Assembly (NCBI GenBank): GCA_002104905.1
Contig: MCFE01000688.1
Location: 1 to 44,926, forward strand
Direction: 5' to 3'
Source: Basidiobolus meristosporus CBS 931.73
Taxonomy: Eukaryota; Fungi; Basidiobolomycota
Length of the DNA stretch: 44,926 nucleotides
Under the pieces are notes generated by a model that saw only the letters and a list, made by a program, of their open reading frames with translations, did not search any database and had not been told where the DNA came from. Both the position numbers and the translations under genes were made by a program. Positions 3,462-27,815 of this stretch are shown in pieces (the first letter of the stretch is position 1; every line of letters begins with the position of its first letter).

Positions 3462-5479
3462 CTGATTAATTCCAACTTTGAGATTTTCAATGAGGTTGAA
3501 CTTACAAGGGTGCATCATGGTAGCATCCATTGCAGCAATGGTAAGACACAACAGATATATATTGCCTACTCACTCATAGCATTACACTGTAGCACTACTT
3601 AAGATTAGTATAATGCCTTTTGGGCATATCTAAAGGATGAGAAGATAAGAAAATCAAGGAGACTGATATTGGGGACTTGTGCAGGTTTAGGGATACAACA
3701 ATAGCTGATCTAGAACTAGTGATCACCAGAAATAGCATCACCTTGCAGGACTTTACTAAGAAATGCTTTGCTACAATAACATTGTGGCTGCCTTGCATAC
3801 ACAATTAAGTTGGTGTGCAACCTATGAACTGATCACTGTGAATACATTTATATTTCCACCACTTAGGGTGACTTATGTATACTTCATAGTTGTATTTATA
3901 TTGATTTACAGACAGTCTGTGTATGCCAAATTCACAGCTTAGCAGCTGAAAGGGGTTCATTGTTGTCCCTACAAACAGGCTTGGTAACACTTTGCTTAAC
4001 AATCAGCTAGCATAGAGTCCCTTTGTCCTTTTGAATTTAGTTCTTTAAGCTTTCTCTAGTAGCTAGCTTATGCTGAGTAGAAAAGTAGTTGGAGATGAGC
4101 AAAATACCATCATAATGTTTACTGAGCTCAGTGCTTAATGGTGCTAATACATATCAATATCTTTGGCCCTAGCTATTGAGCAGACAAGAGGAATAGACAC
4201 TGACAGGAGGCTGGACCAAACAACAGGCAAATCAATTTGCCAATAAGTTGTGCAAGGCTTTCTTGAATGTCTCTAAATAGAAATATGAAGGAAAGGACCA
4301 GCTGAGTGCCAGATAAATACCCTTAGAACCAAAGTCAAATACCAGCATATTGTCAGAAGAGTTGCAAGTTTCAGATTGCTCATGGTGGAGCAAGTAATCA
4401 CTCAAGTGGTACATTCAACAATCATCAACTCTGACAACTCAGAAAGTTGCAAAATAACACAAGTATATAGGAGGCTTAAAAACAAGCAAAATTGACAGGT
4501 ACAAGCAAGTTGGAAGTCATGTAATGCAAGCAGCACCTATACTGCCTTCACTGACCATAGAGGAAGAGCAGAAATACTCTGGTCTTTACAACATCTACAC
4601 ATTGACTTTAGGAGAGGACCAATCAATACCTTCACTGCTTTAAATTAAGCATTAATCCATATTCATGTAGCACACTACCTATGCAGAGTTTTGAAAGCGG
4701 AACTAGATGATCTCAGGGTACCTTGGTCTTTAAAGGGGCAAATTTTTCAATATAATCTGGAGCCCCAATGCATCTGTAGACATGACTGATTTGAATGAGA
4801 GTTACTGATTGATGGCTAAAAGTATCAGCAAGTTGACGGCTAGCACAATAGTAACAGATTAATATGATAGAGCAAAAAAAATGAGGCATTATGCACAACT
4901 ACAACACTTGTATACTCTGACCATCAAAACTATTGATCAACCATGCATAGATACACTCCAAGGATGGTAACAATAATATATATAATAAGAATAACATATA
5001 TAAATATGAAGGATAAAAGCTCCTTGCCCACATGACCATATTGTGGATGTGCAATACCAAAGGACAAAGTTTATATATGTGCTATCCATAGTAATCTATA
5101 CAGAGTAGCAGCAGAAAACAGATAATGTGCCTAATTGAAGGTTGCTTCATATGGCTATAAGAGTCGGCGTGTGATTTTGTCAAAAGTAGAAAGAACAATT
5201 CGTTCCAGCTCATTGTTACTCTTTACTCATATTCCTCGACCAAACTCTGCATGCATGCATTCAGATAAGAAGAAAGAATCACTACGGCATTAAATTACGT
5301 TTAGAGGCCCAAGCTACGCATACTATCGAGTTATATTGCACTCACCACACATACGCCAAGTAGCAAAAATCTATTCATGTGCATAGGCCAGTTATTTTAT
5401 AAGAGTGAATGCAAGCCTCGAATATGCGTACTCATCGGTTTTATTGTCAAGAATATTAATGATGAAGTTGAATGGCGTA

Positions 5480-5663
5480 TATTGCATCCTCCGTATCCCC
5501 CGTAGCGCCCATATCCCCAACGCCCTCCATAATCTTCTCGTCCCCAGTATCTGCTCCTCCGCCGTATCTCCCCCATAGCTCGGCCTCTTCTTGATTACCC
5601 TGCTCTTCCTCGACTCCTTGATTGCTCCAGAGAGTCTGATTGAACGTATTCCTCGACATCTGG
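5480..5663 (-). pseudogene. GY-rich peptide precursor pseudogene (5'-deleted, frameshifted), left edge of array
   Basis: Retains QMSRNTFNQTL...GVEEEQGNQEEAELWGRYGG. The signal peptide, start and TATA are deleted: the sequence joins directly to the upstream promoter segment at ~5665. The core is frameshifted and the CDWGC end is missing. Confidence 0.85.
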
Positions 5664-5920
5664 TTAATAGACATTGCATCTAGGACACTTCGCAGAATTG
5701 ATGGGTTTCAGTCGAATCTATGTTACAAGCATTAGGAAGCTTTGTGCTAGCTCTAGTATACTGTTGTTAGTAAGATAGGGACAAGCATACTGATGTATGT
5801 GTGTTTCCACTAACGCGACTGGTAAAAATGCTGCGAAAAAGAAACACTTCAATTGACTGCCAAACTGTTGACACCCACCTACACATCCACTACCACAACC
5901 TATCTGACTTGTTATCCCTA

Positions 5921-5987
5921 CTGCAGCTTGAGGAACTATGAAAACTGCAGCTTGAGGAACTATGAAAACTGCAGCTTGAGGAACTAT
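5921..5987. repeat. 24-bp tandem repeat (ctgcagcttgaggaactatgaaaa) x2.8
   Basis: Seen directly; the homologous spacer near 8527 has a single related copy. Confidence 0.95.
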
Positions 5988-6114
5988 ACAAACATCACCG
6001 AGTGGCTTCTGTTAATTACGATGAGGCTTAGTATGGGGCGTTGCCTATTGAAAGTATGAAGTTGAGCATGAAACATTGACAATGTGATGTTTATTTAAGG
6101 TAAGGATGTGGTGA

Positions 6115-6185
6115 ATTACCCAGAAACGTAGCGTCCTAATCTCCTTCCGTTGCTGCCATCAGAGTCGGTGTCTTCAGGAATGGAA
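6115..6185 (-). pseudogene. Collapsed relic of a type-B-like GY precursor gene
   Basis: The flanks match those of the intact 8607-9026 gene (taaggatgt.gtg.atta; tcagagtc.gtgtctt; gatgatggagctt). The remnant translates DTDSDGSNGRRLGRYVSG*. Confidence 0.6.
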
Positions 6186-6599
6186 TGATGATGGAGCTTG
6201 ATAAACCTATCTAGTTACATCCAACTCCATTATTTATTCCTAGCCGGTTATTCATGCCACAGCACGCCCTGAAGTATATATGGAGTCAGTGTATAGCTCA
6301 GCTGAACGGTGGTATACGAAATATAAAGATTATTGTACTTCTGTACTTATATAATATATTCCCTTGTAGTGCATATAGTTCGTTTGATATTTGTATAGGC
6401 TGGTTCAAGCATTGAAGGATTCTTATCAAACAACGTCCATTTATTGCATCAAGTGATCATTTTTAGTTGTATAGTCTCATTTGTGAATATCTCCAATGAG
6501 TTGTAGCAAGCGTGTTCAAATATTGTAGAAAACATATACCTTTGAAACCTTATGATCTTCTATACACCAGAGATATGATGGTGTAAGTGTCAGTCAATG

Positions 6600-7016
6600 A
6601 TCAGAGTGTAAGTAATAACTTGACTAGTAGCTTGATGTGATAAATACTTCATCATGAGTGTATTTATCTACCATAGCCGTCATGATTATTAAACAAACGC
6701 GCAAAAGATACACTCCACAAAGCTCAGATGGTCACACGGTCTTGTCTTGGTCAAAATCCGTGTTTGAGGCAGACGTTTTTGAATCAGAATCCTCGTATGA
6801 AAGGCTTATCTACGCATCAACGGGCATCAACGGGCATCAACGGGGCATCATCTTTCACCACCACTATCAGTTATATGCCCAACGGTAAGACTATAGAGAT
6901 TTCAATGAGTTATTTCACTCTACGATTATATGCATGCATTCAATCAAAGCAACTATGCCATTTGTTTACGTATCGAAACCCAAGCCACACACACTATAAC
7001 AAGTCATACACACGAT
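6600..7016 (-). pseudogene. Repeated module C, copy 1 (decayed, unidentified coding-like sequence)
   Basis: Homologous to 10190-10605, 12590-13265, 17815-17970 and 19030-19665. Minus frame reads SYEDSDS...KTV*PSELCGVYLLRVCLIIMTAMVDKYTH. Includes a gcatcaacgg x3 microrepeat at 6814-6843. Confidence 0.5.
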
Positions 7017-7120
7017 AAAGTTGTATATTATTCCCCTTCATTATCTTAGTAACTCTGCTTATCCCCTTATGGCTCTACACAATCTTCTTTAATATTCAAT
7101 TCAACGGTGAAGTACTCACA

Positions 7121-7378
7121 ATACGACTCAATACCGTTCTCTCCTCCTTAAACATGGTACTGCCAACCTGCGTATCAACCTTGGCTCATGGCAACACGTG
7201 ACTGCCGGGCCATTGGATATTGTAAGCATAACTCCCGGACCACCCGGCACCTCCGCCAAAGCAATCCTGTACCTTTCTGTGCAAGATTGCAACAGGAAAA
7301 GGACCAGGTTTGCTGCGATTACCTCGAAACTACGGAAAAGAAGTGACCGTTGGAGCAGTGAGAGTCTCTGCTAACTAG
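7121..7378 (+). pseudogene. Partner secreted-protein gene (family A) pseudogene, copy 1
   Basis: Homologous to 21848-22274. Start mutated to ATA; carries the shared ~146-nt deletion plus a further internal deletion before GKEVTVGAVRVSAN*. Confidence 0.85.
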
Positions 7379-7503
7379 CATTCTCAATAAGAGTCATAAT
7401 CACATGGCCATTCACTATCAATAGATAAAATGCAACGGTACTTTATTCAAGCACACAGACAAGCTGTGTTGTTGGAGTGAATGAAAACCTTGATTCTTAT
7501 TAT

Positions 7504-7936
7504 TTAGCAACCCCAGTCGCATCCACCATACCCTCCATATCCCCCGTAGCGTCCATACCCCCACAGACCTCCATAACCACCGTAGCGACCGTAACGTCCT
7601 CGTCCCCAGTATCTGCCCCTCCGCCGCCCGTATCCGCCGTATCTCCCCCATAGCTGGGCCTCTTCTGGATTGCCCTCCTCTTCCTCGACTCCTTGGTCGG
7701 CATCTTGCTTATCCGAGAGGGTCTGATCGAACGTATTCCTTGACATCTGTCCGAGAATGCCATCGATGTAGTGTCGAATATTCTGCGCATCCTCCTCCTT
7801 GTTGGACGAGAACTTCTTCACCACTTGGCCGCTTTGTGGATCCCTATCGGAGATTTGTGCTTGACACATCCACGGGACTTCCAAAGGCACTGACGACCAT
7901 TAGTAGAGCACAAGCTGCGGTAAATTGTTTGTACAT
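7504..7936 (-). pseudogene. GY-rich peptide precursor pseudogene (17-nt deletion frameshift)
   Basis: True ATG at 7936 (MYKQFTAA...). Span is 433 nt versus 450 in 13873-14322 because ggatgcgctcgctacat is missing, giving a stop after ~30 codons (TNLR*). The downstream frame with the mature peptide is intact. Confidence 0.9.
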
Positions 7937-8606
7937 TGTGAAAGTTGAATACTCCAATAAAGCTCAGCACCAGCCTTTATATAAAGATACAGCATTTGGC
8001 CAAAACGGAGGTTTATAGATATCGCATCTTATGATGGGTTTCTGACGAACGATGTATTGTATTTTGCATCTACTCTACAGGCATTAGCAAGATACAATAA
8101 GAGCTTCTAGAATTGTGAGCTAGCTCTAGTATGTACTAATTAATCATCATATTAGTAGTAGTCAGGCCATTAGATACTATAGAAAGCAGAGTGTAAAGTA
8201 AAATGGTTTGTACTAAGTACACTGATGGGCACTTTGATAATAATGCTAAATCTCTATTGTGGACCAAGGAGACATCGATCCACTCACAACTACAGCATCA
8301 CATGAATATGAGAAAGCTATAGATGGCATTCATGGAAGATTAGGCAAATATGAAGCGAAAAAAAAAGACTTTACTAACAGTACACCATTAAAAGATAAAA
8401 ATTGACAGCATTTAAAGGTAAAGATTGGCATCATTTATGAAGATAATTGACTGCCAAACTGCAATAAGACTTATCTTTGCATAGACATCCACCTTATCCA
8501 TACACATATCTGACTTTCTCTCCCAACTGCGGCTTGGTAAACATCACTGATTAATTACGATGAGCATTGGCATTATGATGTTTATTTAACGTAAGGATGT
8601 AGTGCA

Positions 8607-9026
8607 TTAGCAACCCCAGTCGCATCCACCATACCCTCTATATCCCCCGTAGCGCCCATATCCCCATCGGCCTCCGTAGCCACCATAGCGACCGTAACGT
8701 CCTCGTCCCCAGTATCTGCTTCCCCACCTTCCATAGCCACCATATCTACCCCAAAGCTGGGTCTCTTCAGAGTCAGTGTCTTGACTTGTAGGAGACACTT
8801 GTTCATCTGCCAACCCACCGCCTGACATTTGGCCGAATATGTCGTCAAGAATGGCGCGAGCATCTTCGTCTTTTGTGGACTGGAATTGTGTTATCATTTT
8901 GCCGCTTTGTGGGTCCCGGATGGAGATGGAAGCACTTGCTACATTGGTTACTTCTGGCTGCACAGGAGTTGCCACTGCATATGAGGCAATTAGGAGAGCA
9001 AAGGGGATGGAGAAGTGCTTGTGCAT
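8607..9026 (-). CDS. Secreted Gly/Tyr/Arg/Trp-rich peptide precursor, type B (139 aa, intact)
   Basis: MHKHFSIPFALLIASYAVA (signal-like) + pro region + EETQL|WGRYGGYGRWGSRYWGRGRYGRYGGYGGRWGYGRYGGYRGYGGCDWGC. The start is placed at the ATG at 9026 because the paralogs begin at the homologous cattgtgaa context; the ORF track extends it to 9077. Confidence 0.9.
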   Translation of the reverse strand: MHKHFSIPFALLIASYAVATPVQPEVTNVASASISIRDPQSGKMITQFQSTKDEDARAILDDIFGQMSGGGLADEQVSPTSQDTDSEETQLWGRYGGYGRWGSRYWGRGRYGRYGGYGGRWGYGRYGGYRGYGGCDWGC

Positions 9027-9309
9027 TGTGAATCTGAATGAAGCACTTGAGCTGATTATGAGTAAATATACCCGCACAGCAGAAGCTGATGATGGAGCTT
9101 ATTAAAGACACTCAACTTTACCTCTGCTTTCAGTGGGAAGCGCTGCGGGTGATCCATTTGGTCGTTCAATAGAAACTGCTTAGTGGCTCTTCATTCAATC
9201 AAACACGCATAACACAACAAAAAGCTTAAAAAGATCATTTGTTTAGCAGATATGTTACAGGTTAGCCACCTCCATATTAACCATATGCTAATATTGATTG
9301 TGTGAACTT

Positions 9310-10853: not shown

Positions 10854-11088
10854 GTGCGACTCAATACCGATCTCTGCTCCTTAATCGTGGCACTGCTAAC
10901 CCGCGTATCAACCTCGGCTCATGCTAACACGTGGCCGGTAGATACCGCAAGCATCACTTCCGGGCCATCCAGCACCTCCGCCAAAGCAATAATGTACCCT
11001 TCTCTGTAAGATTACAACAGGAAAAGGAACAGGATTGTTGCGACTACCTCCAAATAACGGAAAAGAAGCAGGAGTCTCAGCCAACTAG
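10854..11088 (+). pseudogene. Family A pseudogene, copy 2
   Basis: Start mutated to GTG. The shared deletion plus a further ~8-nt loss restores the frame (AHANTWPVDTASITSGP), but CAA>TAA stops it after YPSL. Confidence 0.85.
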
Positions 11089-11216: not shown

Positions 11217-11468
11217 TCAGCAACCCCAGTCGCATCCACCATAGCCTCTATATCCCCACCGACCTCCATAACCACCGTAGCGACCGTAGCGTCCTCGTCC
11301 ACAGTATCTGCCCATCCACCACCCATACCCGCCGTATCTCCCATATAGCTGGACCTCTTCACGATTGCCCTCCTCTTCCTCGACTCCTTGGTTGGCATTC
11401 GCCATCTCCATGTACCAATGTGTCCTATCACCGTATCCCCTTCCGTTGCTGCCACAACTCATATTCAT
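11217..11468 (-). CDS. Chimeric, signal-peptide-less GY-rich ORF (83 aa); possibly a pseudogene
   Basis: Open frame. The N-terminal MNMSCGSNGRGYGDRTHWYMEMAN derives from the relic-type sequence seen at ~9310-9400. It is fused to QGVEEEEGNREEVQL and a GY core ending CDWGC. Confidence 0.5.
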   Translation of the reverse strand: MNMSCGSNGRGYGDRTHWYMEMANANQGVEEEEGNREEVQLYGRYGGYGWWMGRYCGRGRYGRYGGYGGRWGYRGYGGCDWGC

Positions 11469-12589: not shown

Positions 12590-13265
12590 ACCTTATGATC
12601 GTCTATATAAGTATCAGTCAGTAATAACTTGGCAAGTAGAATGCTGCCAGCTTGATGCGATAGATGCTCCATCTTACCATCAGGCGCCAAAGTAAGTTTG
12701 TCTATCTATCATAGCCATCATGGTTATTGAACAAACGCTCAAAAGATACTCTCCACAAAGCTCAGATGGTCATAAGATCTTATGCGTGCTGTGGGGCAGA
12801 CAAGAGGTTGAATCAGAGTCCTCGTATGGAAGCCGGTGAGGGACAGCTGTGGTAGGGAGTGATGGAGGTTCAATAGGACGTAATCCCCGTCTCTCATCGC
12901 GTATCTCCCCGATTTTGTCCCCACGTCTTTAGCAAAGTCTTCGCGAACCCCGACCTCGTGGAACCTTTCACTAAGCACCGATACTTACATTTCACTTGGG
13001 ATAAATACCTAAGTTGGTAAAGCCTTTCACCTTATCTACACATCAACTGGGCGTGTCTTTCACCACCACTATCAGTAGTGGGAAGGCTATAAAGATTCGT
13101 GTTTTGAATAGATTTCCACAAGAGCCAGTGAGTTCTTTCACTCTACGAATATATATGCATGCATTCGATCCGGTTTTATACTTACAGCGAATAGAAATTC
13201 AAGCCACGCACACTAAAACAAGCTACTCATACTATAAAATTGTAGCGCCCGTACTTCACTTGACT
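12590..13265 (-). pseudogene. Repeated module C, copy 3 (longest)
   Basis: Minus-strand frames read DSGGERHAQLMCR*GERLYQLRYLSQ, then EIRDERRGLRPIEPPSLPTTAVPHRLPYEDSDSTSCLPHSTHKIL*PSELCGEYLLSVCSITMMAM. Matches 19030-19665. Confidence 0.5.
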
Positions 13266-13466
13266 TAAGCCTTATTATGTTACTAGTAGCAAGGAACGGG
13301 CTCGCTTGGCTAGAAACTGAAGTAAGGGTAATACACCCAGGAGTGATCAAATATTCCCCTTCATTGCCATGGTAACTCTGCCTATCTCTCCTTGCCTACC
13401 GTCCCTATCCCCTTAAAGCTCTATACAGTCCTCTTCAGTATCCAATTCAGTGGTGAAACACACACA

Positions 13467-13747
13467 ATGCGATTCAATACCCTTCTCTGCTCCTTAACCG
13501 TGGCACTGCTAACCCGCGTGTCGACATCAGCTCATGTCGACACGTGACCTGCAAACCGGTAGATATCACAAGCATCACTTCCGGTCCACCCGGCACCTCC
13601 GCCAAAGTAATCCTGTACCCTTCCCTGCAAGATTGCAACCGTAAAAGGAACACGACTGCTACGATTACCTCTAAACAACTCAAGATATACATCGCGAAGT
13701 ACGGAAAAGAAGTGACCGTTGGAGCAGTGAGAGTCTCTGCCAACTAG
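13467..13747 (+). pseudogene. Family A pseudogene, copy 3
   Basis: ATG 13467 gives MRFNTLLCSLTVALLTRVSTSAHVDT* (TGA 13545-13547). The exon-2-like frame (TCKPVDITSIT...GAVRVSAN*) stays open but is out of frame. Confidence 0.85.
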
Positions 13748-13872
13748 CATTCTCAATAAGAGTCATAATCACATGGCCATTCACTATCAATAGATAAAAT
13801 GCAACGGTACTTTATTCAAGCACATAGGCAAGTTGTATTGTTGGAGTGGATGAAAGCCTTGATTCTTACTAT
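13748..13872. terminator. Conserved ~125-bp convergent intergenic/3'-end region between family A and GY genes
   Basis: The block ctctcaataagagtcataatcacatggccattcactatcaatagataaaatgcaacggtactttattcaagc recurs at ~7380, 20130, 22950 and 24820. It includes a minus-strand AATAAA (13811-13816), the probable poly(A) signal of the GY gene. Confidence 0.6.
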
Positions 13873-14322
13873 TCAGCAACCCCAGTCGCATCCACCATAC
13901 CCTCCATATCCCCCGTAGCGTCCATATCCCCACCGACCTCCATAACCACCGTAGCGACCGTAGCGTCCTCGTCCCCAGTATCTGCCCCTCCGCCGCCCAT
14001 ATCCACCGTATCTCCCCCATAGCTGGGCCTCTTCAGGATTGCCCTCCTCTTCCTCGACTCCTTGGTCGGCGTCTTGCTTATCCGAGAGGGTCTGATCGAA
14101 CGCATTTCTTGACATCTGGCCGAGAATGCCATCGATGTAGTGTCGAATATTCTGCGCATCCTCTTCCTTGTTGGACGAGAACCTCTTCACCACTTGGCCA
14201 CTTTGTGGATCCCTATCGGAGATGGATGCGCTCGCTACATTTGTGCTTGACACATCCACGGGACTTCCAAAGGCATTGACGGCCATTAGTAGAGCACAAG
14301 CTGCGGTAAGTTGTTTGTACAT
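13873..14322 (-). CDS. Secreted Gly/Tyr/Arg/Trp-rich peptide precursor, type A (149 aa, intact)
   Basis: MYKQLTAACALLMAVNAFG|SP signal-like segment; acidic pro region (DKQDADQGVEEEEGNPEEAQL); 48-aa core with 21 G, 10 Y, 10 R, 4 W, 2 C, 1 D; TATATAAA 40 bp upstream. Confidence 0.92.
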   Translation of the reverse strand: MYKQLTAACALLMAVNAFGSPVDVSSTNVASASISDRDPQSGQVVKRFSSNKEEDAQNIRHYIDGILGQMSRNAFDQTLSDKQDADQGVEEEEGNPEEAQLWGRYGGYGRRRGRYWGRGRYGRYGGYGGRWGYGRYGGYGGYGGCDWGC

Positions 14323-14361
14323 TGTGAATGTTGAATACTCAAATAAAGCTCAGCACCAGTC

Positions 14362-14369
14362 TTTATATA
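14362..14369 (-). promoter_or_regulatory. TATA box (TATATAAA) of type A GY gene
   Basis: Sits 40 nt upstream of the ATG; same motif and spacing at 20743-20750 and 25413-25420. Confidence 0.65.
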
Positions 14370-14690
14370 CACATACAAGATGGAGGTTGATTGATATCGC
14401 ATCTAGGAAGCCTCAGTCAAATGATGTAGTATATTTTGGAGGCAACCACCGCAGCCAAAGTACAAACACTCGATTTCTGTTAACAACAACACTAGTCGTG
14501 GTATAGAGATTTCTATACTATGTTATATGAAAGCGGCAAGTATTTCTCTCATAAACGGAAATGGGTAGAAAACCAGTGAGAGCCTCAAAAGAGAGCCTCA
14601 AAAATTGGCCTTTATTTGGCATGATTTAGAGTTGTGGATGATCGCAATATTGGTAGTAAGCTTAACAGCATGATGTATTAAATTAGCAGC

Positions 14691-14990
14691 TCAAGCAAAC
14701 CCTCCAAGTTCCCAGCGACCATCATAGTCCCCGCAAACCTCCAAATCCACTGTAGCGTCCATATCCCCAATGCCTGCCTCTCTATTGTATCTCCCCCACA
14801 ACTGGGCTTCTGGATCACTTTCCTCCTCCTCTGAGGCTCCTTAATTAGAGACAATATTTAGGAATGTACTCTTTTATATTTGGCCAAGAAGGCCATCAAT
14901 ATAGCCTCAAATATTATGCGCATCTTCCTCCTTGTCAGACTGGAATTGCCATTGTATATTTTGGAAGCAATCACCCCTCTATAAGCTTCA
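14691..14990 (-). pseudogene. Divergent GY precursor relic, type C (C-terminus ...GRWELGGFA*)
   Basis: Minus strand reads QFQSDKEEDAHNI*GYIDGLLGQI*...EEEESDPEAQLWGRYN, with frameshifts, then WGYGRYSGFGG. The 3' end is shared with 21072-21110, and the 5' part is replaced by unique sequence from ~15000. Confidence 0.75.
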
Positions 14991-15332: not shown

Positions 15333-16325
15333 ATGCAAACCCACCTTGAATGGACCAATGAGCACCCTACAGTTGCTAGTGCTGTAAAGCTCTGCTTGGA
15401 GGTCAGAAGCTGGCAAGAGGCCCACAGAATAATCTCAACCGTCAAGGCAATTCTTCATCGCTTCAAAATTACATCAACTTCATCAGGTGGCATATTTACC
15501 ACTGTTTATTGCGATGGAACTTCAATGGAGGATGATTTGAGGTTTCTTGAGCATGCAACTAGCCATTTACTGCTGAATTCTATTCAAGCAGCAAATAGCT
15601 ACAACATTACGCCCTTTTCCACTGCAACAGTGCTTAACACTGGAAATATTAGCAATATTCAGAATCCAAAGGTATCCCAATTCATTTGCGACATTCAGCA
15701 ATACACAACAAAGTTCAGATTGGCCAAGCAGCTAGCAAAGGATGCTGGCTGCTCACCTTCAGAAACACAAGAATCTGGTGCGTATGGCTACGGTAGTCAA
15801 CAAATGCCAATATCAATATTAGGATTCTTGCGCATGTTATCAAAGGATGTACATCAGTGCAGAATTATGGAAGAAGCAGCCACTGGAGCATCCAATGCAT
15901 TTTACTATAACCTTTACAGCTGCTATAGTACCTTTGCAAGAATGACACTGACAAACCACCAACCATCCACAATTCAAACTGCTCTTGGGGCCAGCAAGAT
16001 CATTCTACACGCATTACGGTTTACAATACGTAAGCAATATCCTCATTTTAACTATAACCGTTTTAAGCAGGCTCTGGACCGGGCTGGGCCAGTATATATG
16101 ATCACAAACTTCTTAGGCACTGGTATTTTGTCCTACCCTACAATATTTTCAGCTAACCAATTAGCTGAGATGAAATCTGAGAATTTGCAATATCTTTACA
16201 GATATTTTGCACAAAACCCTAATATGCGAAACTCATTTTGCAAAGAGTTTGAAACAGATGAATTTGAAATATTCGCTATTGATGAAATATTTGATCCATG
16301 GGCTAGCTGCTTCTGGAATAGATAG
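15333..16325 (+). CDS. Orphan intronless 330-aa protein, single copy; weak resemblance to a mononegavirus nucleoprotein
   Basis: By far the longest ORF in the window; in-frame stop at 15309-15311 fixes the ATG; AATAAA at ~16380; no signal peptide. GPVYMITNFLGTGILSYPTIFS loosely echoes the G..APYM...SYPLLWS block of paramyxovirus N (eye-level similarity only). Confidence 0.7.
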   Translation: MQTHLEWTNEHPTVASAVKLCLEVRSWQEAHRIISTVKAILHRFKITSTSSGGIFTTVYCDGTSMEDDLRFLEHATSHLLLNSIQAANSYNITPFSTATVLNTGNISNIQNPKVSQFICDIQQYTTKFRLAKQLAKDAGCSPSETQESGAYGYGSQQMPISILGFLRMLSKDVHQCRIMEEAATGASNAFYYNLYSCYSTFARMTLTNHQPSTIQTALGASKIILHALRFTIRKQYPHFNYNRFKQALDRAGPVYMITNFLGTGILSYPTIFSANQLAEMKSENLQYLYRYFAQNPNMRNSFCKEFETDEFEIFAIDEIFDPWASCFWNR

Positions 16326-16601: not shown

Positions 16602-16794
16602 GTGCGATTTAATACCGTTCTCTGCTCCTTAACCATTAACCTGCGTATCAACCTCAGCTCATGCCAACACGTGACCACCCAGCACCTCCGCCAAAGCAAT
16701 CCTGCACCCTTCTCTGCAAGATAACTACAGGAAAAGGAACAGGATTGCTGCGATTACCATTAAACAACGGAAAAGAAGTGACCATTGAAGCTAG
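16602..16794 (+). pseudogene. Family A pseudogene, copy 4 (multiple deletions)
   Basis: GTG start; shared deletion plus further deletions; still recognisable (cctccgccaaagcaatcctg...aggattgctgcgattacc). Confidence 0.8.
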
Positions 16795-16945: not shown

Positions 16946-17338
16946 TCAGCAACCCCAGTCGCATCCACCATAGCCTCCATATCCCCCGTAGCGTCCATAT
17001 CTCCATCGACCTCCATAACCACCGTAGCAACCGTAACGTCCTCGTCACCAGTATCTGCCCCATAGCTCGGCCTCTTCTGGATTGCCCTCCTCTTCCTCAA
17101 CTCCTTGATCGGCGCCTTGCTTGCTCGATCGAACGTATTCCTTGACATCTGGCTGAGAATACCATCGATGTAGTGTCGAAAATTCTGCGCATCCTCCTCC
17201 CTGTTGGACGAGAACTTCTTCACCACTTGGCCGCTTTGTGGGTTTCTATCGGAGATTTGTGCTTGACACATCCACGGGACTTCCAAAGGCACTGACGACC
17301 ATTAGTAGAGCGCAAGCTGCGGTAAGTTGTTTGTACAT
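16946..17338 (-). pseudogene. GY precursor pseudogene (same 17-nt deletion as 7504-7936, plus ~10-nt and ~30-nt deletions)
   Basis: ATG at 17338, stop TGA at 16946-16948; has the ggagatttgtgc junction identical to the 7504 copy. Confidence 0.9.
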
Positions 17339-17731
17339 GGTGAATGTTGAATACTCCAATAAAGCTCGGCACCAGCCTTTATATACAGGGACAGCTTTTG
17401 GCCAAGACGGAGGTTTATAGACATCACATCTAGGAAGCTTCGCGAAATTGATGGGTTTCGGACGAACGATATATTATATTTTGCATCTATTCTACAGGCA
17501 TTAGGAAGATACAATAAGAGCCTCTAGAATAGTGTCACCATATAGTATATACTAATTAATCGTCATATTAGTAGTAGTCAGACCATTAGATACTATAGAA
17601 AGCAGAATGTAAAGTAAAATGGTTCGTACAGTCCAGGTCGACAGCACCACATGAATATAAGAAAGCTATAGACGGCATTCATGGAAGATTTCGAAAAAAA
17701 AGACTTTACTAACAGCACACCTTTGAAAAGT

Positions 17732-17794
17732 AGGGGTTGCCACCGCATATGAGGCAATTAGGAGAGCAAAGGTGACGGAGAAGTGCTTGTACAT
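17732..17794 (-). pseudogene. Type B GY gene fragment (signal peptide only)
   Basis: MYKHFSVTFALLIASYAVATP followed directly by spacer sequence; the rest of the gene is deleted. Confidence 0.8.
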
Positions 17795-18179: not shown

Positions 18180-18414
18180 GTGCGATGCAATACCGTTCTC
18201 TGCTCCTTAACCGTGGCATTGCTAACCCGCGTATCAACATCGGCTCATGCTAACACGTGTCCGGTAGATACCGCAAGCATCACTTTTGGACTATCCAGCA
18301 CCTCCGCCAAAGCAATCATGTACCCTTCTCTGTAAGATTGCAACAGGAAAAGGAACAGGATTGTTGCGACTGCTTCCAAATAACGGAAAAGAAGTAGGAG
18401 TCTCTGCCAAGTAG
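18180..18414 (+). pseudogene. Family A pseudogene, copy 5
   Basis: Same lesions as 10854-11088 (GTG start, extra ~8-nt loss, YPSL*). Confidence 0.85.
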
Positions 18415-18518: not shown

Positions 18519-18752
18519 TCAGCAACCCCAGTCGCATTCACCATACCCTCCATAACCACCGTAGCGACCGTAACGTCCTCGTCCCCAGTATCTGCCCCTC
18601 CACCGCCCATACCCGCCGTATCTCCCCCATAGCTCGGCCTCTTCGGGATTGCCTTCCTCTTCCTCGACTCCTTGGTCAGCATTCGCCATCTCCATGTACC
18701 AATGTATCCTATCACCGTATCCCCTTCCGTTGCTGCCACAAATCATATTCAT
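18519..18752 (-). CDS. Chimeric, signal-peptide-less GY-rich ORF (77 aa); possibly a pseudogene
   Basis: Duplicate of 11217-11468 with a shorter core: WGRYGGYGRWRGRYWGRGRYGRYGGYGGYGECDWGC. Confidence 0.5.
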   Translation of the reverse strand: MNMICGSNGRGYGDRIHWYMEMANADQGVEEEEGNPEEAELWGRYGGYGRWRGRYWGRGRYGRYGGYGGYGECDWGC

Positions 18753-19029: not shown

Positions 19030-19665
19030 AATGAACCTTATAAGTATCAGTCAGTAATAACTTGACAAGTAGAATGCTGCCAGCTTCATGTGACAGATAC
19101 TCCAACATGAGTGTATTTATCTACCATATCCATCATGGTTATTAAGCAAACGCTCAAAAGATATTCTCCACAAAGATCAGATGGTCACAAGATCTTATCC
19201 GTGTTGTAGGGCAGACGAGAGGTTGATTCAGAATCCTTGTATGGAAGGCGGTGAGGGACAGCCGTTGTAGAGAGAGATGGAGGTTCAATAGGGCTTAATC
19301 CCCGTCTCTTATCGCGTATCTCTCCAGTTTCGTCCCCACGTCTCTAGCCCGACCTCGTGCAACCTTTCACTAAGCAGTAATACTTACATGCCACTTGGGA
19401 TAAATACCCAAGCTGGTAAAGCCTTTCACCTAATCTACGCACCAACCGGGCGTGTCTTTCACCACCACTATCAGTCATGGAAAGGCTATAAAGATTTGTG
19501 TTTTGAATAAATTTTACCACGAGCCAGTGAGTTATTTCACTCTACGAATATATATACATGCATTCAATCCGGTTTTACACTTACAGCGAATAGAAATTCA
19601 AGTCACACACACTAAAACAAGCTACTCATACTATAAAATTGTAGCGCCCGTACTTCACTTGATTT
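19030..19665 (-). pseudogene. Repeated module C, copy 5
   Basis: Collinear with 12590-13265; minus frame MTDSGGERHARLVRRLGERLYQLGYLSQVA. Confidence 0.5.
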
Positions 19666-19865
19666 AAGCCTTTTTATGTTACTAGTAGCAAGGAACGGGC
19701 TCGCTTGGCTAGAAACTGAAGTAAGGGTAATACACCCAGGAGTGATCAAATATTCCCCTTCATTGCCATGGTAACTCTGCCTATCTCTCCTTGCCTACCG
19801 TCCCTATCCCCTTAAAGCTCTATACAGTCCTCTTCAGGATTCAATTCAGTGGTGAAACGCACACA

Positions 19866-20128
19866 ATGCGATTCAATACCCTTCTCTGCTCCTTAACCGT
19901 GTCAACATCAGCTCATGTCAACACGTGACCTGCGAACCGGTAGATATCACAAGCATCACTTCCGGTCCACCCAGCACCTCCGCCAAAGTAATCCTGTACC
20001 CTTCCCTGCAAGATTGCAACCGTAAAAGGAACATGACTGCTACGATTACCTCTAAACAACTCGAGAGATACATCGCGAAGTACGGAAAAGAAGTGACCGT
20101 TGGAGCAGTGAGAGTCTCTGCCAACTAG
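19866..20128 (+). pseudogene. Family A pseudogene, copy 6
   Basis: ATG 19866; shared deletion plus an 18-nt loss in the signal region; downstream frame TCEPVDITSIT...GAVRVSAN* is out of frame. Confidence 0.85.
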
Positions 20129-20253
20129 CATTCTCGATAAGAGTCATAATCACATGGCCATTCACTATCAATAGATAAATTGCAACGGTACTTTATTCAA
20201 GCACATAGGCAAGTTGTATTGTTGGAGTGGATGAAAGCCTTGATTCTTATTAT

Positions 20254-20703
20254 TCAGCAACCCCAGTCGCATCCACCATACCCTCCATATCCCCCGTAGC
20301 GTCCATATCCCCATCGACCTCCATAACCACCGTAGCGACCGTAACCTCCTCGTCCCCAGTATCTGCCCCTCCGCCGCCCATATCCACCGTATCTCCCCCA
20401 TAGCTGGGCCTCTTCTGGATTGCCCTCCTCTTCCTCGACATCTTGGTCGGCGTCTTGCTTATCCGAGAGGGTCTGATCGAACGTATTTCTTGACATCTGG
20501 CCGAGAATGCCATCGATGTAGTGTCGAATATTCTGCGCATCCTCTTCCTTGTTGGACGAGAACCTCTTCACCACTTGGCCACTTTGTGGATCCCTATCGG
20601 AGATGGACGCGCTCGCTACATTTGTGCTTGACACATCTACGGGACTTCCAAAGGCACTGACGACCATTAGTAGAGCACAAGCTGCGGTAAGTTGGTTGTA
20701 CAT
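20254..20703 (-). CDS. Secreted GY-rich peptide precursor, type A (149 aa, intact)
   Basis: Near-identical to 13873-14322; one R>G in the core; TATA at 20743-20750. Confidence 0.92.
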   Translation of the reverse strand: MYNQLTAACALLMVVSAFGSPVDVSSTNVASASISDRDPQSGQVVKRFSSNKEEDAQNIRHYIDGILGQMSRNTFDQTLSDKQDADQDVEEEEGNPEEAQLWGRYGGYGRRRGRYWGRGGYGRYGGYGGRWGYGRYGGYGGYGGCDWGC

Positions 20704-21071
20704 TGTGAATGTTGAATACTCAAATAAAGCTCAGCACCAGTCTTTATATACACATACAAGATGGAGGTTGATTGATATCGCATCTAGGAAGCTTCAGTCA
20801 AATGATGTAGTATATTTCGGAGGCAACCACCGCAGCCAAAGTACAAACACTCGATTTCTGTTAACAACAACACCAGTCGTGGTATAGAGATTTCTATACT
20901 ATGTTATATGAAAGTGGCAAGTGTTTATCTCGTAAGCGGAAATGGGTAGATAAACAGCGAGAGCCTCAAAAGAGAGCCTCAAAAATTGGCCTTTATTTGG
21001 CATGATTTAGAGTTGTGGATGATCGCAATATTAGTAGTAAGCTTAACAGCATGATGTATTAAATTAGCAGC

Positions 21072-21254
21072 TCAAGCAAACCCTCCAAGTTCCCAGCGAC
21101 CATTATAGTCCCCGAAGTGACCATAACGACCTCGTCACCTGCCCTTTCTGGTGCGAGCACCTTCTTCCTACACACCGTTTCCTGGCTTTGGAGAAGAGAT
21201 GGATACACTTGTCACATTAAAAAGTATTAGAACGATGGAAAAGTACTTGCGCAT
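21072..21254 (-). pseudogene. Type C GY precursor relic (internally deleted)
   Basis: MRKYFSIVLILFNVTSVSISSPKPGNGV*EEGARTRKGR*RGRYGHFGDYNGRWELGGFA*. Confidence 0.75.
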
Positions 21255-21847: not shown

Positions 21848-22274
21848 ATGCGATTCAGTACCGTTTTCTGCTCCTTGACCATGGCACTACTAGCCTGCAC
21901 AACAACTTCAGCACAATCCTCTAGTGCGTTACTAAGTATGTAATCAGTGTATAACTCAACTAGCCGCAACCAGTGAGCCTTACTAACCAAATACTTACAA
22001 TGTAGAATTGGTGAATACTCCTGAAGATATTGCACAACAACTACCATTCTCAGCTGGCTCATGCCAACGCGTGACCTTTGGACCGGTGGATACTGCCAGC
22101 ATCACCCCTGAATCACCCAGTACCGCCGCCCAAGCAATCCTGTATCCTTCTTTGCAAGATTGTAACAATCGCAGGAACAGGATTGCTGCTATAACATCCA
22201 AACAACTCGAGGTACATATCGCCAAGAACGGAAAAGAAGTGACTGTTGGAGCAGTAAGAGTATCTGTCAGCTAG
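21848..22274 (+). CDS. Intact two-exon small secreted protein, family A (118 aa; exons 21848-21935 and 22006-22274)
   Basis: Spliced product: MRFSTVFCSLTMALLACTTTSAQSSSALLKLVNTPEDIAQQLPFSAGSCQRVTFGPVDTASITPESPSTAAQAILYPSLQDCNNRRNRIAAITSKQLEVHIAKNGKEVTVGAVRVSVS. Exons total 357 nt, in frame. Signal-like N-terminus. Against the 22670 paralog's exon 2 I count about 17 synonymous and 17 non-synonymous codon differences, a synonymous excess per site that supports coding in this frame. Confidence 0.88.
21936..22005 (+). other. 70-nt spliceosomal intron
   Basis: GTATGT donor (21936-21941), TACTAAC branch point (21981-21987), TAG acceptor (22003-22005); phase 1, restores the frame. Confidence 0.9.
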
Positions 22275-22669: not shown

Positions 22670-22950
22670 ATGCAATTCAAATCCGTTCTCTGCTCCTTAA
22701 CCGTGGCACTGCTAACCCACATATCAACCTCGGCTCATGCCAACACGTGATCTGCGAACCGGTAGATACCGCAAGCATCACTTTCGGACCGCCCAGCACC
22801 TTCGCCAAAGCGATCCTGTACCCTTCTCTGCAAGATTGCAACCGCAAAAGGAGCAGGATTGCTACGATTACCTCTAAACAACTCGAGATACACATCGCGA
22901 AGTACGGAAAAGAAGTGACCGTTGGAGCAGTGGTAGTTTCTGCCAGCTAG
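22670..22950 (+). pseudogene. Family A pseudogene, copy 8
   Basis: MQFKSVLCSLTVALLTHISTSAHANT* (TGA 22748-22750); the exon-2-like frame is open to GAVVVSAS* but out of frame. Confidence 0.85.
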
Positions 22951-23087
22951 CACTCTCAATAAGAGTCATAATCACATGGCCATTCACTATCGATAGATAA
23001 AATGCAACGGTACTTTATTCAAGCACACAGACAAGCTGTGTTGTTGGAGTGAATGAAAGCCTTGATCCTTGTTATTAAGGAGTTTAC

Positions 23088-23524
23088 TCAGCAACCCCAG
23101 TCGCATCCACCGTACCCTCCATATCCCCCGTAGCGTCCATATCCCCACCGACCTCCATAACCACCGTAGCGACCGTAGCGTCCTCGTCCCCAGTATCTGC
23201 CCCTCCGCCGCCCATATCCGCCGTATCTCCCCCATAGCTGGGCCTCTTCAGGATTACCCTCCTCTTCCTCGACTCCTTGGTCGGCTTCTTGCTTATCCGA
23301 GAGGGTCCAATCGAACGCATTTCTTGACATCTGGCCAAGAATGCCATCGATGTAGTGCCGAATATTTTGCGCATCCTCCTCCTTGTTAGACGAGAACTTC
23401 TTCACCACTTGTTCCTACCGGAGATGGATGCGCTCGCTACATTTGTGCTTGACACATCCACGGGACTTCCAAAGGCACTGACGACCGTTAATAGAGCACA
23501 AGCTGCGGTAAGTTGTTTGTACAT
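23088..23524 (-). pseudogene. GY precursor pseudogene (13-nt deletion frameshift)
   Basis: ATG 23524; span 437 nt = 450-13. The lesion at ~23410 gives ASISGRNKW*, and it differs from the 17-nt lesion in the other two frameshifted copies. Confidence 0.9.
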
Positions 23525-23920
23525 TGTGAAAGTCGAATACTCTAATAAAGCTCAGCACCAGCCTTTATATACAGATACAGCATTTGGACAAGACGGAGGC
23601 TTATAGATATCGCATCTAGGAAGCTTCAGTCAAATGATGTAGTGTATTTCGGAGGCAACCACCGTAGCTGAAGTATAAATACTCGATTTCTGTTTGTCTT
23701 CTACCGCAATAATCAACAATGCTAGTCATGGTATAAAGATGCCTATACTGTGTTTCATGAAAGTGGTAGGTACTTCTCTCGTAACCGGAAATGGGTAGAA
23801 AAGTAGCGAGAGCCTCCAAAGAGTGCCGCAAAAATCGGCCTTTATTTTGCATGATTTAGAGTTGTGTTTGATGACAGTATTAATAGTAAGCTTAACAGCA
23901 TGATGTAATGGATTAGTAGC

Positions 23921-24058
23921 TCAAACAAGCGAGCATCTTCTTTGGTTGGCTGGAACCTACACACCATTTCTCGGCTTTGGAGAAGAGATGAACACACTTA
24001 TCACATTGACTGTACCGGAATTTAAAAGCATAAGGACGATGGAAAAGTGCTTGCGCAT
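23921..24058 (-). pseudogene. Type B/C-like GY precursor relic (core deleted)
   Basis: MRKHFSIVLMLLNSGTVNVISVFISSPKPRNGV*, then FQPTKEDAR in a shifted frame; related to 21072-21254. Confidence 0.7.
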
Positions 24059-24535: not shown

Positions 24536-24816
24536 ATGCGATTCAAAACCGTTCTCTGCTCCTTAACCGTGGCACTGCCAACCCGCATATCAACCTCGGC
24601 TCATATCAGCTCGTGACCTGCGAACCGGTAGATACCGCAAGCATCGCTTCCGGACCGCCCAGCACCTTCGCCAAAGCGATCAGGTACCCTTCCATACAAG
24701 ATTGCAACCGTAAAAGGAACAGGATTGCTACAATTACCTCCAAACAACCCAAGATACACATCGCGAAGTACGGAAAAGAAGTGACCGTTGGAGCAGTGAG
24801 AGTTTCTGCCAGCTAG
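24536..24816 (+). pseudogene. Family A pseudogene, copy 9 (intact-type promoter with deletion-type coding region)
   Basis: The upstream region matches 21720-21847, including TATAAAA. The coding part has the shared deletion: MRFKTVLCSLTVALPTRISTSAHISS*. Confidence 0.85.
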
Positions 24817-24941
24817 CACTCTCAATAAGAGTCATAATCACATGGCCATTCACTATCAATAGATAAAATGCAACGGTACTTTATTTAAGCACACAGACAA
24901 GTGGTGTTGTTGGAGTGAATAAAAGCCTTGATTCTTATTAT

Positions 24942-25373
24942 TCAGCAACCCCAGTCGCATCCACCATACCCTCCATACCCCCACCGACCTCCGTAACCAC
25001 CGTAGCGGCCGTAACCTCCTCGTCCCCAGTATCTGCCCCTCCGCCGCCCATATCCGCCGTATCTCCCCCATAGCTCGGCCTCTTCAGGATCGCCCTCCTC
25101 TTCCTCGACTCCTTGGTCGGCGTCTTGCGTATCCGAGAGAGTCTGGTCGAAAATATTTCTTGACATCTGGCCAAAAATGCCATCAATATAGTGCCGAATA
25201 TTCTGCGCATCCTCTTCCTTGTTGGACGAGAACCTCTTCACCACTTGGCCGCTTTGCGGGTCCCTATCGGAGATGGATGCGCTCGCTACATTTGTGCTTG
25301 ACACATCTACGGGACTTCCAAAGGCACTGACGACCATCAATAGAGCACAAGCTGCGGTAAGTTGGTTGTACAT
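24942..25373 (-). CDS. Secreted GY-rich peptide precursor, type A (143 aa, intact ORF, 42-aa core)
   Basis: As 20254-20703 but 6 codons shorter in the core. TATA retained at 25413-25420, but ~260 bp of conserved upstream sequence is deleted at ~25450. Confidence 0.9.
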   Translation of the reverse strand: MYNQLTAACALLMVVSAFGSPVDVSSTNVASASISDRDPQSGQVVKRFSSNKEEDAQNIRHYIDGIFGQMSRNIFDQTLSDTQDADQGVEEEEGDPEEAELWGRYGGYGRRRGRYWGRGGYGRYGGYGGRWGYGGYGGCDWGC

Positions 25374-25885
25374 TGTGAATGTTGAATACTCAAATAAAGC
25401 TCAGCACCAGTCTTTATATACACATACAAGATGGAGGTTGATTGATATCGCTTAACAGCATGATATATTAGATTAGCAGCTCAACCAAAGGATGCCTCTT
25501 GTGTATCTTTACGTTATCAATCACGTACTGGTTATCGTGTTCTTTCACTACCACCAAGAGATGAACACATGGGCAATACTTATGTAACCGCTCAATATTA
25601 TGCTCCATCCTTATGCCCCGAACAAACTATGTATGCACTTAATACTAATAGCCTCAGTGTAGCAGAAACTACGACACTTTATTTACGCCTAGATCGCGCT
25701 CACCAATGCTTATATTCGGAGTGAATACAATATTATGGTATAAATATAGGATATTCCGCTTCAGCATCATGGTAGCTCAGCCTGTTTTTCCTTACAAGCC
25801 GGGCTAATTCCATATAAAATCGCTTGTAATGTTCACCTTATTCATCAGGCATACATACAAAAGCACACACACAGAAGCACACACA

Positions 25886-26000
25886 ATGCGATTCAGTACC
25901 GTTTTCTGCTCTTTGGTCATGGCACTACTTGCCTGCATGTCAACTTCAGCACAATCCTCTGGTGCACTACTAAGTATGTAACCAGCATATAACTCCACAA
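25886..26000 (+). pseudogene. Family A copy 10: exon 1 and intron donor only (3' truncated)
   Basis: MRFSTVFCSLVMALLACMSTSAQSSGALL (25886-25973) followed by GTATGT. Similarity to the 21936 intron is lost after ~26000, and there is no exon 2. Confidence 0.8.
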
Positions 26001-26229
26001 TTCGCAGCTAAAGTGACCATAATGTTGTGGTAAGTTCACGAATTAGATCAGAATTTTGACTGTTGTTTCTTATCAATAGGATTCAAGTACAGCCCAACTA
26101 TGATGTTGAATCAATTGTGGCTGAGTCGTCATACTATTTAATCGCTATATTGTGATACTTAAGTTGCATCTATCTATACACACTATGTGTACACACTATC
26201 TATACGTATTACAGATTAAGCTACCCGAG

Positions 26230-26670
26230 AATGCCTTATACCTCGCTGGGCACGCACCTTCATAACACTTTGTGAATTCTGAAAAACACAACGCTGTTCC
26301 TTCTGCAACAGGATGTTTATTCATTCGCCCAAGCCAGCTTGGGATGTGCTAGCTTTAGGTTCAAACACAATGGCTGTCAAGGCTTCACAAGCAGGCGAAG
26401 TCTCCAGAGGCTCGTCTATATTCCTACGCATAGCTGGCTTCCCTTTAAACTTTGCTACTACTTCGCCATTCTCCATCGTTAGCTCCTGCAGCCCATGTGT
26501 TGCTGAGAATACCTCGCACACCACGCGAAGAACCAGCATGGCTCTTTCTCTATAGATACGGTCCTGGGCTTGCACCATGGTTTGCATAACAATGTCAAGC
26601 CATTGTCCCTTTATAGCAAAAACTTCACTCCAATATGATCAGATGACGGCTCGAACAATGGCCCTTTGTA
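26230..26670 (-). pseudogene. Unidentified coding-like relic
   Basis: One minus frame reads QRAIVRAVI*SYWSEVFAIKGQWLDIVMQTMVQAQDRIYRERAMLVLRVVCEVF...SQAGLGE*INILLQKEQRCVF. It has two in-frame TGA codons and retains CpG, unlike the TE flanks. Confidence 0.35.
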
Positions 26671-27569
26671 AGTTTAATTAAAACTGGATTTCAACCATTG
26701 TTTCAACCATTGTTTAGTATTGATAATATGCCAACAACGATATGAGGCAATCCCGTTCAAGTTACATGCCAAGCAATGATGATGCTGAATTTTATTTATA
26801 TAGCTTGAGCCAATTGGGGCGTGGGAGCTGAGTCACCGTTCTGTTGGAGAGGGGCTTGCTGTTGTGAACAGAACGATGAGTTGACAGTAAATTGAGAATA
26901 TTGAATGCTCGACATTAGCTAATATACATGGCTAATTGATATGCAGTCAAATGATGTAGTACATTTCAGAAACAACCACTGCACAAACACTCGCTCATGA
27001 AAACAAATCACAATGCAAGTCGAGCAAAGAGATTTCTAACAACTACCATGGCCCTTCATCACACTATGCATGCATTCAATCCGGCCTAACATTTATGGTT
27101 GTAAAGAAAGCGCAACTATATCACTTGATCTATGCTCACCATAGCACTAGTAAAGTCTTATCCACAATGAGCAGACAGCATCAGTAGATACCCATAGCTA
27201 GTCACTCTTTCTTAGCCTGCGAGTCAACTCAAATTAGTATGTAGTCGATGTCTAGCTTGACTGGACATAACTAGTGACTGTTGATTGCTCAAATAAAGCT
27301 TAGCACTGTTTTCGGCCAAGATGGAGGTTGATTGAAATCCCATCCATGAAACTTCTCGGAATTGATGGGTTTCAGTCAAATGCTGTAGTGTATTTTGGAG
27401 GCAAACACCGCAGCTAGCATACAACCGCTTTTCCTTCTGTCTTCCACAGCAATAAGCGACTAAGCTAGCCATAGCAGAGAGATTCTTGTGTGAAAATGTC
27501 AAATATTGCTCACGTAAACAAATACAAGTGGGCAAGCAGCAAACAGCACGGCATAGTAGGCTAGTAATT

Positions 27570-27815
27570 CATCCGCACCCTCCATATTTCCAACAACCAC
27601 TATAGTACTGGTGACGTTGTCGCCACCAATATTTGCCCTGCCTTTTCTGGCACAAGCGTCTTCATCCTTGGTTGGCTGGGACCTATGTACATCTCTCAGG
27701 CTTTGACAAAGAGATGAAGGCACTTGCCCCATTGGTATCCTTTGGCTGCACCTGAGTCCATACTAAAATCCTCAGACCATTAGGAACGCACGGATGATGG
27801 GAATATGCTTGTGTT
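27570..27815 (-). pseudogene. Decayed type B/C GY precursor relic, right edge of array
   Basis: Fragments KHKHIPIIRAFLMV*, TQVQPKDTNGASAFISLSKPE, SQPTKDEDA and GKYWWRQRHQYYSGCWKYGGCG* correspond in order to precursor segments. Confidence 0.65.

Follow-up and report, generated by a model that had tools for sequence, protein, structure and literature searches.

Why a fungus should carry, in tandem and many times over, a small gene whose predicted product ends in a Gly/Arg/Tyr/Trp-rich cationic tail is the question raised by contig MCFE01000688.1 (C1021) of Basidiobolus meristosporus CBS 931.73. The window analysed here is this entire 44,926-bp contig, one of 1366 in an assembly of 89.5 Mb. A sequence-only reading had described a 22-kb array of about 17 secreted prepro-peptide genes whose products end in a CDWGC motif. 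The array is real and lies far beyond chance, given the purifying selection on its reading frame and the recurrence of the gene in 39 or more intact copies across the genome; the number of members is 15, not about 17. Its genes very probably encode a real, secreted and selected cationic peptide precursor. The explanation that we favour, with a probability of roughly 0.45, is that the precursor is processed to cationic peptides with an antimicrobial or defence role.

The array and its intact genes

A DNA profile was built on the intact family copies, and the segment counts in the window derive from it. It found 15 minus-strand segments between 5486 and 27812 (E 4e-165 to 1e-4): four intact, three full-length with frameshifts or stops, and eight fragments, i.e., 11 of the 15 are non-functional. 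According to the listing of open reading frames (ORFs) and tblastn, the intact ORFs end in ...GGCDWGC, and the four intact genes of the earlier reading were recovered in that listing on the minus strand with exactly its coordinates. The copies fall into type A and type B:

13873-14322, minus strand: intact type-A gene, 149 aa plus stop, single exon (ORF; 100% reference copy; an NCBI hypothetical protein)
20254-20703, minus strand: intact type-A gene, 149 aa (ORF, tblastn, DNA profile)
24942-25373, minus strand: intact type-A gene, 143 aa, core shorter by 6 residues (ORF, tblastn, DNA profile)
8607-9026, minus strand: intact type-B gene, 139 aa (ORF, tblastn, alignment)
7507-7936, minus strand: full-length type-A copy, frameshift near codon 29 (tblastn match split between two frames; profile match over 430 of 447 nt; TAG present)
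23091-23524, minus strand: full-length type-A copy, frameshift near codons 39-42 (tblastn, DNA profile)
16949-17338, minus strand: full-length divergent copy, one TGA and one TAG in frame, shortened core (tblastn, profile)
5486-5667, minus strand: degenerate 3′-half fragment (DNA profile)
11220-11397, minus strand: 5′-truncated copy, acidic run and core with CDWGC end (tblastn, DNA profile)
14693-14949, minus strand: degenerate fragment with stops inside (tblastn, DNA profile)
17733-17794, minus strand: fragment with the end of the signal-peptide region only (DNA profile)
18522-18681, minus strand: 5′-truncated copy, shortened core (tblastn, DNA profile)
21084-21141, minus strand: short degenerate core fragment (tblastn, DNA profile)
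23930-24023, minus strand: short 5′ fragment (DNA profile)
27653-27812, minus strand: outermost 5′ fragment of the peptide family (DNA profile)

The prepro region of the type-B gene is ~52% identical to that of type A, and its core differs at only ~4 positions. The modules of the array are irregularly spaced and share 78–93% DNA identity, the closest pair being 12606-14733 and 19039-21114 with 92.9%. Such spacing and divergence point to an old birth-and-death array and not to a recent duplication.

At least 28 intact type-A and at least 11 intact type-B copies were found across the genome, on ~15 contigs and among 148 matching segments, in agreement with the dosage amplification proposed earlier; NCBI annotates family members as hypothetical proteins. 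Selection was estimated by Nei-Gojobori counts of the ratio of nonsynonymous to synonymous substitutions (dN/dS). Among 23 type-A copies the ratio fell from 0.52 in the signal region to 0.23 in the propiece (dS 0.17) and 0.088 in the core (dS 0.075). In the comparison of type A with type B, the core gave dS 0.64 and dN 0.035 (ratio 0.055), and the propiece dN 0.42 with saturated dS. Purifying ratios of this kind indicate that the frame is read as protein. Within the precursor, constraint is strongest on the low-complexity tail, and recent gene conversion alone does not account for how well this part is conserved.

Signals of a transcription unit accompany the frame. In an alignment of 23 units, the coding sequence (CDS) and the 50 nt upstream are the best conserved, and conservation collapses further 5′; per 50-nt bin the CDS values are 0.79–0.985, with at least 0.91 in all bins except the last. 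Every full-length copy has a TATA box 44–47 nt before the ATG (GTATATAAA; in type B GTATATTTA), the start context TTCACAATG around the ATG is conserved among copies, and an AATAAA hexamer is found 21–57 nt past the stop:

14362-14370, minus strand: TATA box GTATATAAA, 47 nt upstream of the ATG of the 13873 gene
9063-9071, 17378-17386, 20743-20751, 23564-23572 and 25413-25421, minus strand: TATA elements of other full-length copies
13811-13816, minus strand: AATAAA hexamer, 57 nt after the stop of the 13873 gene
8581-8586, 20192-20197 and 24880-24885, minus strand: equivalents of the AATAAA hexamer in the other intact genes

Each intact unit is very probably a TATA-driven single-exon gene for a secretory precursor of 139–149 aa.

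Charge, isoelectric point (pI) and hydropathy bear out, in the intact genes, the described order of signal-like N-terminus, acidic pro region and cationic core. The parts of the 13873 gene are as follows, a slash marking a putative cut here and below:

14266-14322, minus strand: putative signal-peptide codons, aa 1-19 (hydropathy, AFG/SP site, helix in the AlphaFold2 (AF2) model)
14020-14265, minus strand: acidic propiece, aa 20-101, ending in the NPEEAQL junction (charge, pI 4.2)
13876-14019, minus strand: cationic Gly/Arg/Tyr/Trp core, aa 102-149, ending in CDWGC (composition, pI, dN/dS)

The N-terminus has one Lys in its n-region and an 11-residue hydrophobic core with Kyte-Doolittle values of 2.2–2.6 (2.41 over residues 5–15 in the 13873 gene). 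Small residues stand at −3/−1 near aa 17–19 (AFG/SP in type A, AVA/TP in type B), and the helix 3–17 of the AF2 model overlaps the signal region. The propiece is 71–81 aa long, with a net charge of −7 to −13 and a pI of 4.2, and contains a low-confidence AF2 helix at 52–83. The core has 42–48 aa among the intact genes and a net charge of +7 to +9. In the 13873 gene it consists of 44% Gly, 21% Arg, 21% Tyr and 8% Trp, lacks Lys, and has a pI of 10.2 and a mass of 5.48 kDa; the earlier count of 10 Arg, one Asp and two C-terminal Cys in it is right. It has a net charge of +9 and contains three RYGGYG units, and the only two Cys in the window precursors both lie within the terminal CDWGC (C-x3-C). 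The core is predicted to be disordered, with a predicted local distance difference test score (pLDDT) of ~40, and the whole model (pLDDT 48.6, from a 16-sequence alignment) has no globular domain. One dibasic site, RRR, occurs in the type-A core and none in the type-B core, and a known protease motif such as KR is absent directly before the core. In-silico cutting after Arg gives YGGYGR, YGGYGGR and YGGYGGYGG...CDWGC pieces.

Relatives within and beyond the genus

Weak genome matches led to further tandem arrays on contigs C705, C184, C847, C34, C25 and C136. The sister proteins align (MAFFT) with the window genes in three regions, namely the signal peptide, an 'NVASAS'-type block, and the acidic run with the junction, where E97, E98, L101, W102 and R104 are invariant across the subfamilies. 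The junction motif [DN][PS]EE[AT][EQ]L/W[GR]R[YF]GG is common to the superfamily; the regular expression used fixed some positions beforehand, and the MAFFT alignment and hidden Markov model matches show them independently. Beyond the junction the cores are wholly different: (GRW)n, (GPFRRY)n, or a shorter GYR core with a CYDWDC end, and in B. ranarum either (DRYRRHDY)n or RGRF repeats with an acidic Cys-rich tail. A search of the pro region by profile had been suggested in the sequence-only reading; such a profile of the prepro region gave 14 hits among 1.84 billion representative proteins, all of them from B. meristosporus or B. ranarum. By alignment and profile matching, the window family is one branch of a superfamily found only in Basidiobolus, and it is the linkage of separate arrays, B. 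ranarum members included, through a common prepro region and junction that appears as new.

The charge of the propiece cancels that of the core in nearly every branch: −7 to −13 versus +7 to +9 in the GYR branch, −13 to −16 versus +13 to +14 in the (GRW)n branch, and −17 versus +17 in one (GPFRRY)n member. Arg is the sole basic residue in all superfamily cores, alongside aromatics and Gly, and the propieces use Lys freely. A conserved scaffold and junction followed by variable, charge-matched cationic tails suggest the layout of a precursor.

Several sister loci were recorded. Tandem arrays of (GRW)n/(GRGRW)n genes at ~1.2-kb spacing occur at L031, L032 (C705:30000-56999) and L033 (C184:1-9000); these precursors of 188–193 aa, with cores of +13/+14, have signal, propiece blocks and junction in common with the window family. 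Two (GPFRRY)n-type precursors, L038:1689-2180 on the minus strand (C25) and L033:6811-7362 on the plus strand, have cores of +17/+18 with regularly spaced RR and look like candidates for Kex2-type processing. In B. ranarum, the 7.9-kb contig JASJQH010001049.1 (L042) carries four tandem superfamily genes (437-1189, 1667-2443, 3294-4055 and 5735-6448) whose cores are RGG/RGRF repeats followed by the acidic Cys-rich end NDDCGGDDCGDC. On JASJQH010008265.1 (L041; 265-1679, 3185-3532) of the same species, a tail-less, propiece-only homologue (P0041) lies beside a Sulfotransfer_3 (PF13469) gene, an adjacency that is a single observation.

Searches beyond the genus agree with the earlier view that this is not a described fungal family. 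NCBIfam gave no hit at E ≤ 1 for the four members tested, and a PDB sequence search no significant match for the family. In Pfam, type B had no match, and the best match of type A was GRP (PF07172) with 11.3 bits (E 0.59) against a cut-off of 30. Plant glycine-rich proteins of this kind (guava Pg-AMP1 class) also combine a signal peptide with a GGY-type Gly-rich region, and some have a Cys-containing C-terminus and antimicrobial activity; at such a score the likeness is compositional only. A strong match to a characterised structural protein family was looked for in Pfam, NCBIfam and PDB, and none was present. Only Basidiobolus proteins were recovered from a database of 5.8 billion proteins, the core alone found no short relatives outside Basidiobolus, a metagenome scan found no superfamily member, and an Atlas feature search with the (GRW)n sister gave no usable match. 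The literature on Basidiobolus together with glycine-rich, antimicrobial, cationic, or ribosomally synthesised and post-translationally modified peptides yielded no description of the family.

Three assignments were rejected. Two members bear the UniRef name 'RSAM-associated Gly-rich repeat protein', which no match to an NCBIfam model supports. An oomycete glycine-rich cluster was proposed by an Atlas feature match of 0.83, which is chance level. Fungal defensins and proteins of the AFP type need at least six Cys and a cysteine-stabilised αβ or β-barrel fold; here there are two Cys and a core predicted to be disordered.

Possible roles: defence peptide, glue, signal or unprocessed polymer

According to the explanation that we favour, the precursor would enter the secretory pathway with its acidic propiece neutralising the tail and keeping the peptide harmless and soluble, and an endoprotease would cut at the conserved L/W junction. 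Once released, the Arg/aromatic peptide of 5.5 kDa, whose C-terminus may be shielded by a C-x3-C disulfide loop, would bind to anionic microbial envelopes, Arg contributing charge and hydrogen bonding and Tyr/Trp interfacial insertion and cation-π contacts. Its role in the gut, in dung and in litter would be one of defence or competition, with the many gene copies allowing production in bulk.

In defensin, cathelicidin and frog-skin precursors an anionic propiece neutralises the cationic peptide until cleavage; the same balance of anionic propiece and cationic C-terminal peptide is found here, with one exception in the superfamily. Cathelicidin and amphibian skin precursors also join a conserved signal and anionic pro region to diverse cationic C-terminal peptides, Trp/Arg-rich and Pro/Arg-rich cores occurring on both sides, and repeats of the Arg/Trp and Pro/Arg-rich types count among the classic antimicrobial motifs. 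The likeness is one of design principle only: unlike cathelicidins, the family has no cathelin fold in the AF2 model and no KR or elastase-type site, and variation in the window branch is lowest, not highest, in the mature part.

Nematode NLP-29/31-type peptides and caenacins (CNC) are, like the core, secreted, basic and Gly/aromatic-rich with YGGYG/YGGWG motifs, are encoded in gene clusters, and are classed as infection-induced antimicrobial peptides (AMPs) (PMC6780910). The resemblance to them and to mussel Mfp-3 pointed out in the earlier reading holds for composition and does not extend to a detectable sequence relationship; homology to nematode nlp/cnc was not detected in the database, profile and core-only searches, and the kingdoms differ. 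A long acidic propiece, a PEExEL/W junction or a CDWGC end is, to our knowledge, absent from the nematode precursors. Bacteria are dense where Basidiobolus lives, and the fungus has been found to correlate with gut bacterial community structure (PMC10964425). Taken together, the precursor layout, the Arg/Trp motifs, the nematode YGGYG AMPs and the habitat among gut bacteria favour peptides of defence or competition.

A number of points weigh on the other side. The near-invariant core is the opposite of AMPs diversifying in an arms race and fits a material or a fixed target equally well, and the composition of the core appears equally like that of mussel and sandcastle-worm adhesive proteins. 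Charge balance is broken in L033:6811-7362 (−3 versus +18), and the signal peptide was judged by hydropathy and −3/−1 heuristics, not by SignalP. As to transcription, RNA-seq exists for B. meristosporus CBS 931.73 (PMC7466969) and no RNA run containing the peptide-gene stretch was listed. Direct antimicrobial tests of the nematode NLP/CNC peptides are themselves scarce (PMC6780910).

The main rival is an adhesive or structural material, which we consider a minority possibility. The tail, cleaved or uncleaved, might coacervate through Arg-Tyr/Trp cation-π contacts, perhaps with polyanions or with acidic Gly/Tyr proteins from other genes and perhaps crosslinked via Tyr or Cys, and capilliconidial beak glue or a spore-wall layer may be the site. 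Distal adhesive material is present on capilliconidia of Basidiobolaceae (PMC13370150). The extreme conservation of the core and the very high gene dosage suit a bulk material, the two terminal Cys could join chains, and the lack of a listed RNA run would fit stage-specific expression. Mfp-3 and sandcastle-worm cement proteins are secreted, disordered, Gly/Tyr/Arg(/Trp)-rich polycations of ~5 kDa with many near-identical gene variants, and the 5.5-kDa core comes close to them in composition and size; no homology was found in the core-only search, and their precursors are not known to have an acidic propiece. A long charge-matching propiece is, in fact, a feature that we do not know from any adhesive precursor. 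The (GRW)n or RGRF cores carried by sister branches on the prepro scaffold of the window family contain little Tyr, which means that chemistry based on Tyr or 3,4-dihydroxyphenylalanine (DOPA) cannot be the common denominator of the superfamily; nor did the window show a tyrosinase or crosslinking gene. A more specific form is unlikely: the peptides would be the polycation half of a complex-coacervate glue on capilliconidia, paired with separately encoded, secreted acidic Gly/Tyr proteins and sticking spores to arthropod carriers. In that case the core would be released from its propiece at the spore surface, and the glue would be convergent with mussel and sandcastle-worm adhesives.

Against processed defence peptides stand also two explanations to which we give little credence. 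One is a precursor resembling those of polypeptide hormones, in which proprotein convertases of the fungus, or trypsin in the host gut, would cut at Arg and release short Tyr-Gly-Gly-aromatic signals acting between fungal cells or on an animal host. Cutting after Arg does yield YGGYGR-type peptides, the nematode YGGYG NLPs also have neuropeptide roles (PMC6780910), and B. meristosporus is, in a survey of 1461 fungi, the richest in Kex2-processed repeat proteins (KEPs) (PMC7329392). That survey (Umemura 2020, PMC7329392) describes KEPs as having a signal peptide and a repetitive, peptide-yielding region and as being lineage-specific and often duplicated, as is the family here. An N-terminal signal peptide is indicated in the window genes by hydropathy, the −3/−1 rule and the AF2 helix 3–17, and the sisters (GPFRRY)n and (DRYRRHDY)n, with regular RR as in KEPs, would have the required three or more units bounded by dibasic KR/RR. 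The window genes themselves, with one RRR in type A and no dibasic site in type B, lack repeats bounded by KR/RR; having at most one dibasic site, they fall outside the definition of KEPs, and membership was rejected. The (GRW)n cores, too, are nearly without dibasic sites, and conservation of the whole core, CDWGC included, points to a tail that functions uncut. Conversion of the core by gut trypsin to enkephalin-like YGG peptides acting on the host is highly improbable.

The other explanation, held with as little credence, is a secreted, unprocessed block polyampholyte in wall or matrix, or an amplified ORF that serves no present function. No known protease motif of the KR type precedes the core, 11 of the 15 window segments are dead and no RNA run was listed. 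Loss of function is argued against by dN/dS of 0.06–0.23 with substantial dS, by the 39 or more intact copies with conserved promoter elements, and by the retention of the superfamily in two species; an unprocessed polymer is harder to reconcile with the invariant junction motif, for which a processing site is the simplest interpretation.

Neighbourhood and significance of the array

A second orphan gene family is interspersed with the array, and a degenerate copy of it lies convergent, 3′ of each peptide gene. Its homologues were found only in B. meristosporus (K493DRAFT_307959 and K493DRAFT_342978).

21848-21935 and 22006-22274, plus strand: exons of the only intact copy, 118 aa, signal-like start, two Cys, 70-nt GT..AG intron
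7165-7329, 10854-11054, 13467-13738, 16678-16767 and 18180-18380: degenerate copies
19913-20119, 22670-22947, 24536-24813 and 25886-25978: further degenerate copies

Between modules, the array is interrupted by a 330-aa ORF (15333-16325, plus strand) that had no Pfam or PDB match. Its single-sequence AF2 model is all-helical with a pLDDT of 36, and its weak likeness to MACPF/cytolysin-type clusters in Atlas features (0.82) is at chance level. The rest of the window is gene-poor and showed no protease, tyrosinase or transporter ORF. A 34-bp satellite occupies 37325-44926 (7.6 kb; ~224 copies, 75% matching, GC skew +0.44) and reaches the end of the contig, so that a satellite block adjoins the array in gene-poor surroundings.

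Animals are well known to make gene-encoded linear cationic peptides in which a conserved prepro scaffold carries exchangeable Arg/aromatic cores, and the fungal ribosomal antimicrobials known to us are cysteine-stabilised folds. No described fungal equivalent of such modular prepro/Arg-aromatic peptides was found in the literature search. As judged from sequence comparison, the architecture, a charge-neutralised cationic precursor with a Gly/aromatic-rich peptide, is a known one, and the genus-restricted fungal superfamily that uses it is new. The family provides a clean case of dosage amplification, in which birth-and-death turnover goes together with purifying selection on a low-complexity region.

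Basidiobolus species occasionally infect people and animals. Provided that the peptides are produced and active, a gut fungus from an early-diverging lineage would have independently evolved either a cathelicidin-like modular arsenal or a mussel-like glue, and several natural sequences of 30–50 residues, namely GYR-CDWGC, (GRW)n and (GPFRRY)n, would be ready for synthesis. Should the peptides belong to a coacervate glue, a spore adhesive of the entomophthoralean type would for the first time have a molecular identity. More generally, the family would offer a molecular handle on how Basidiobolus shapes the gut bacteria of herptiles or on how its spores attach.

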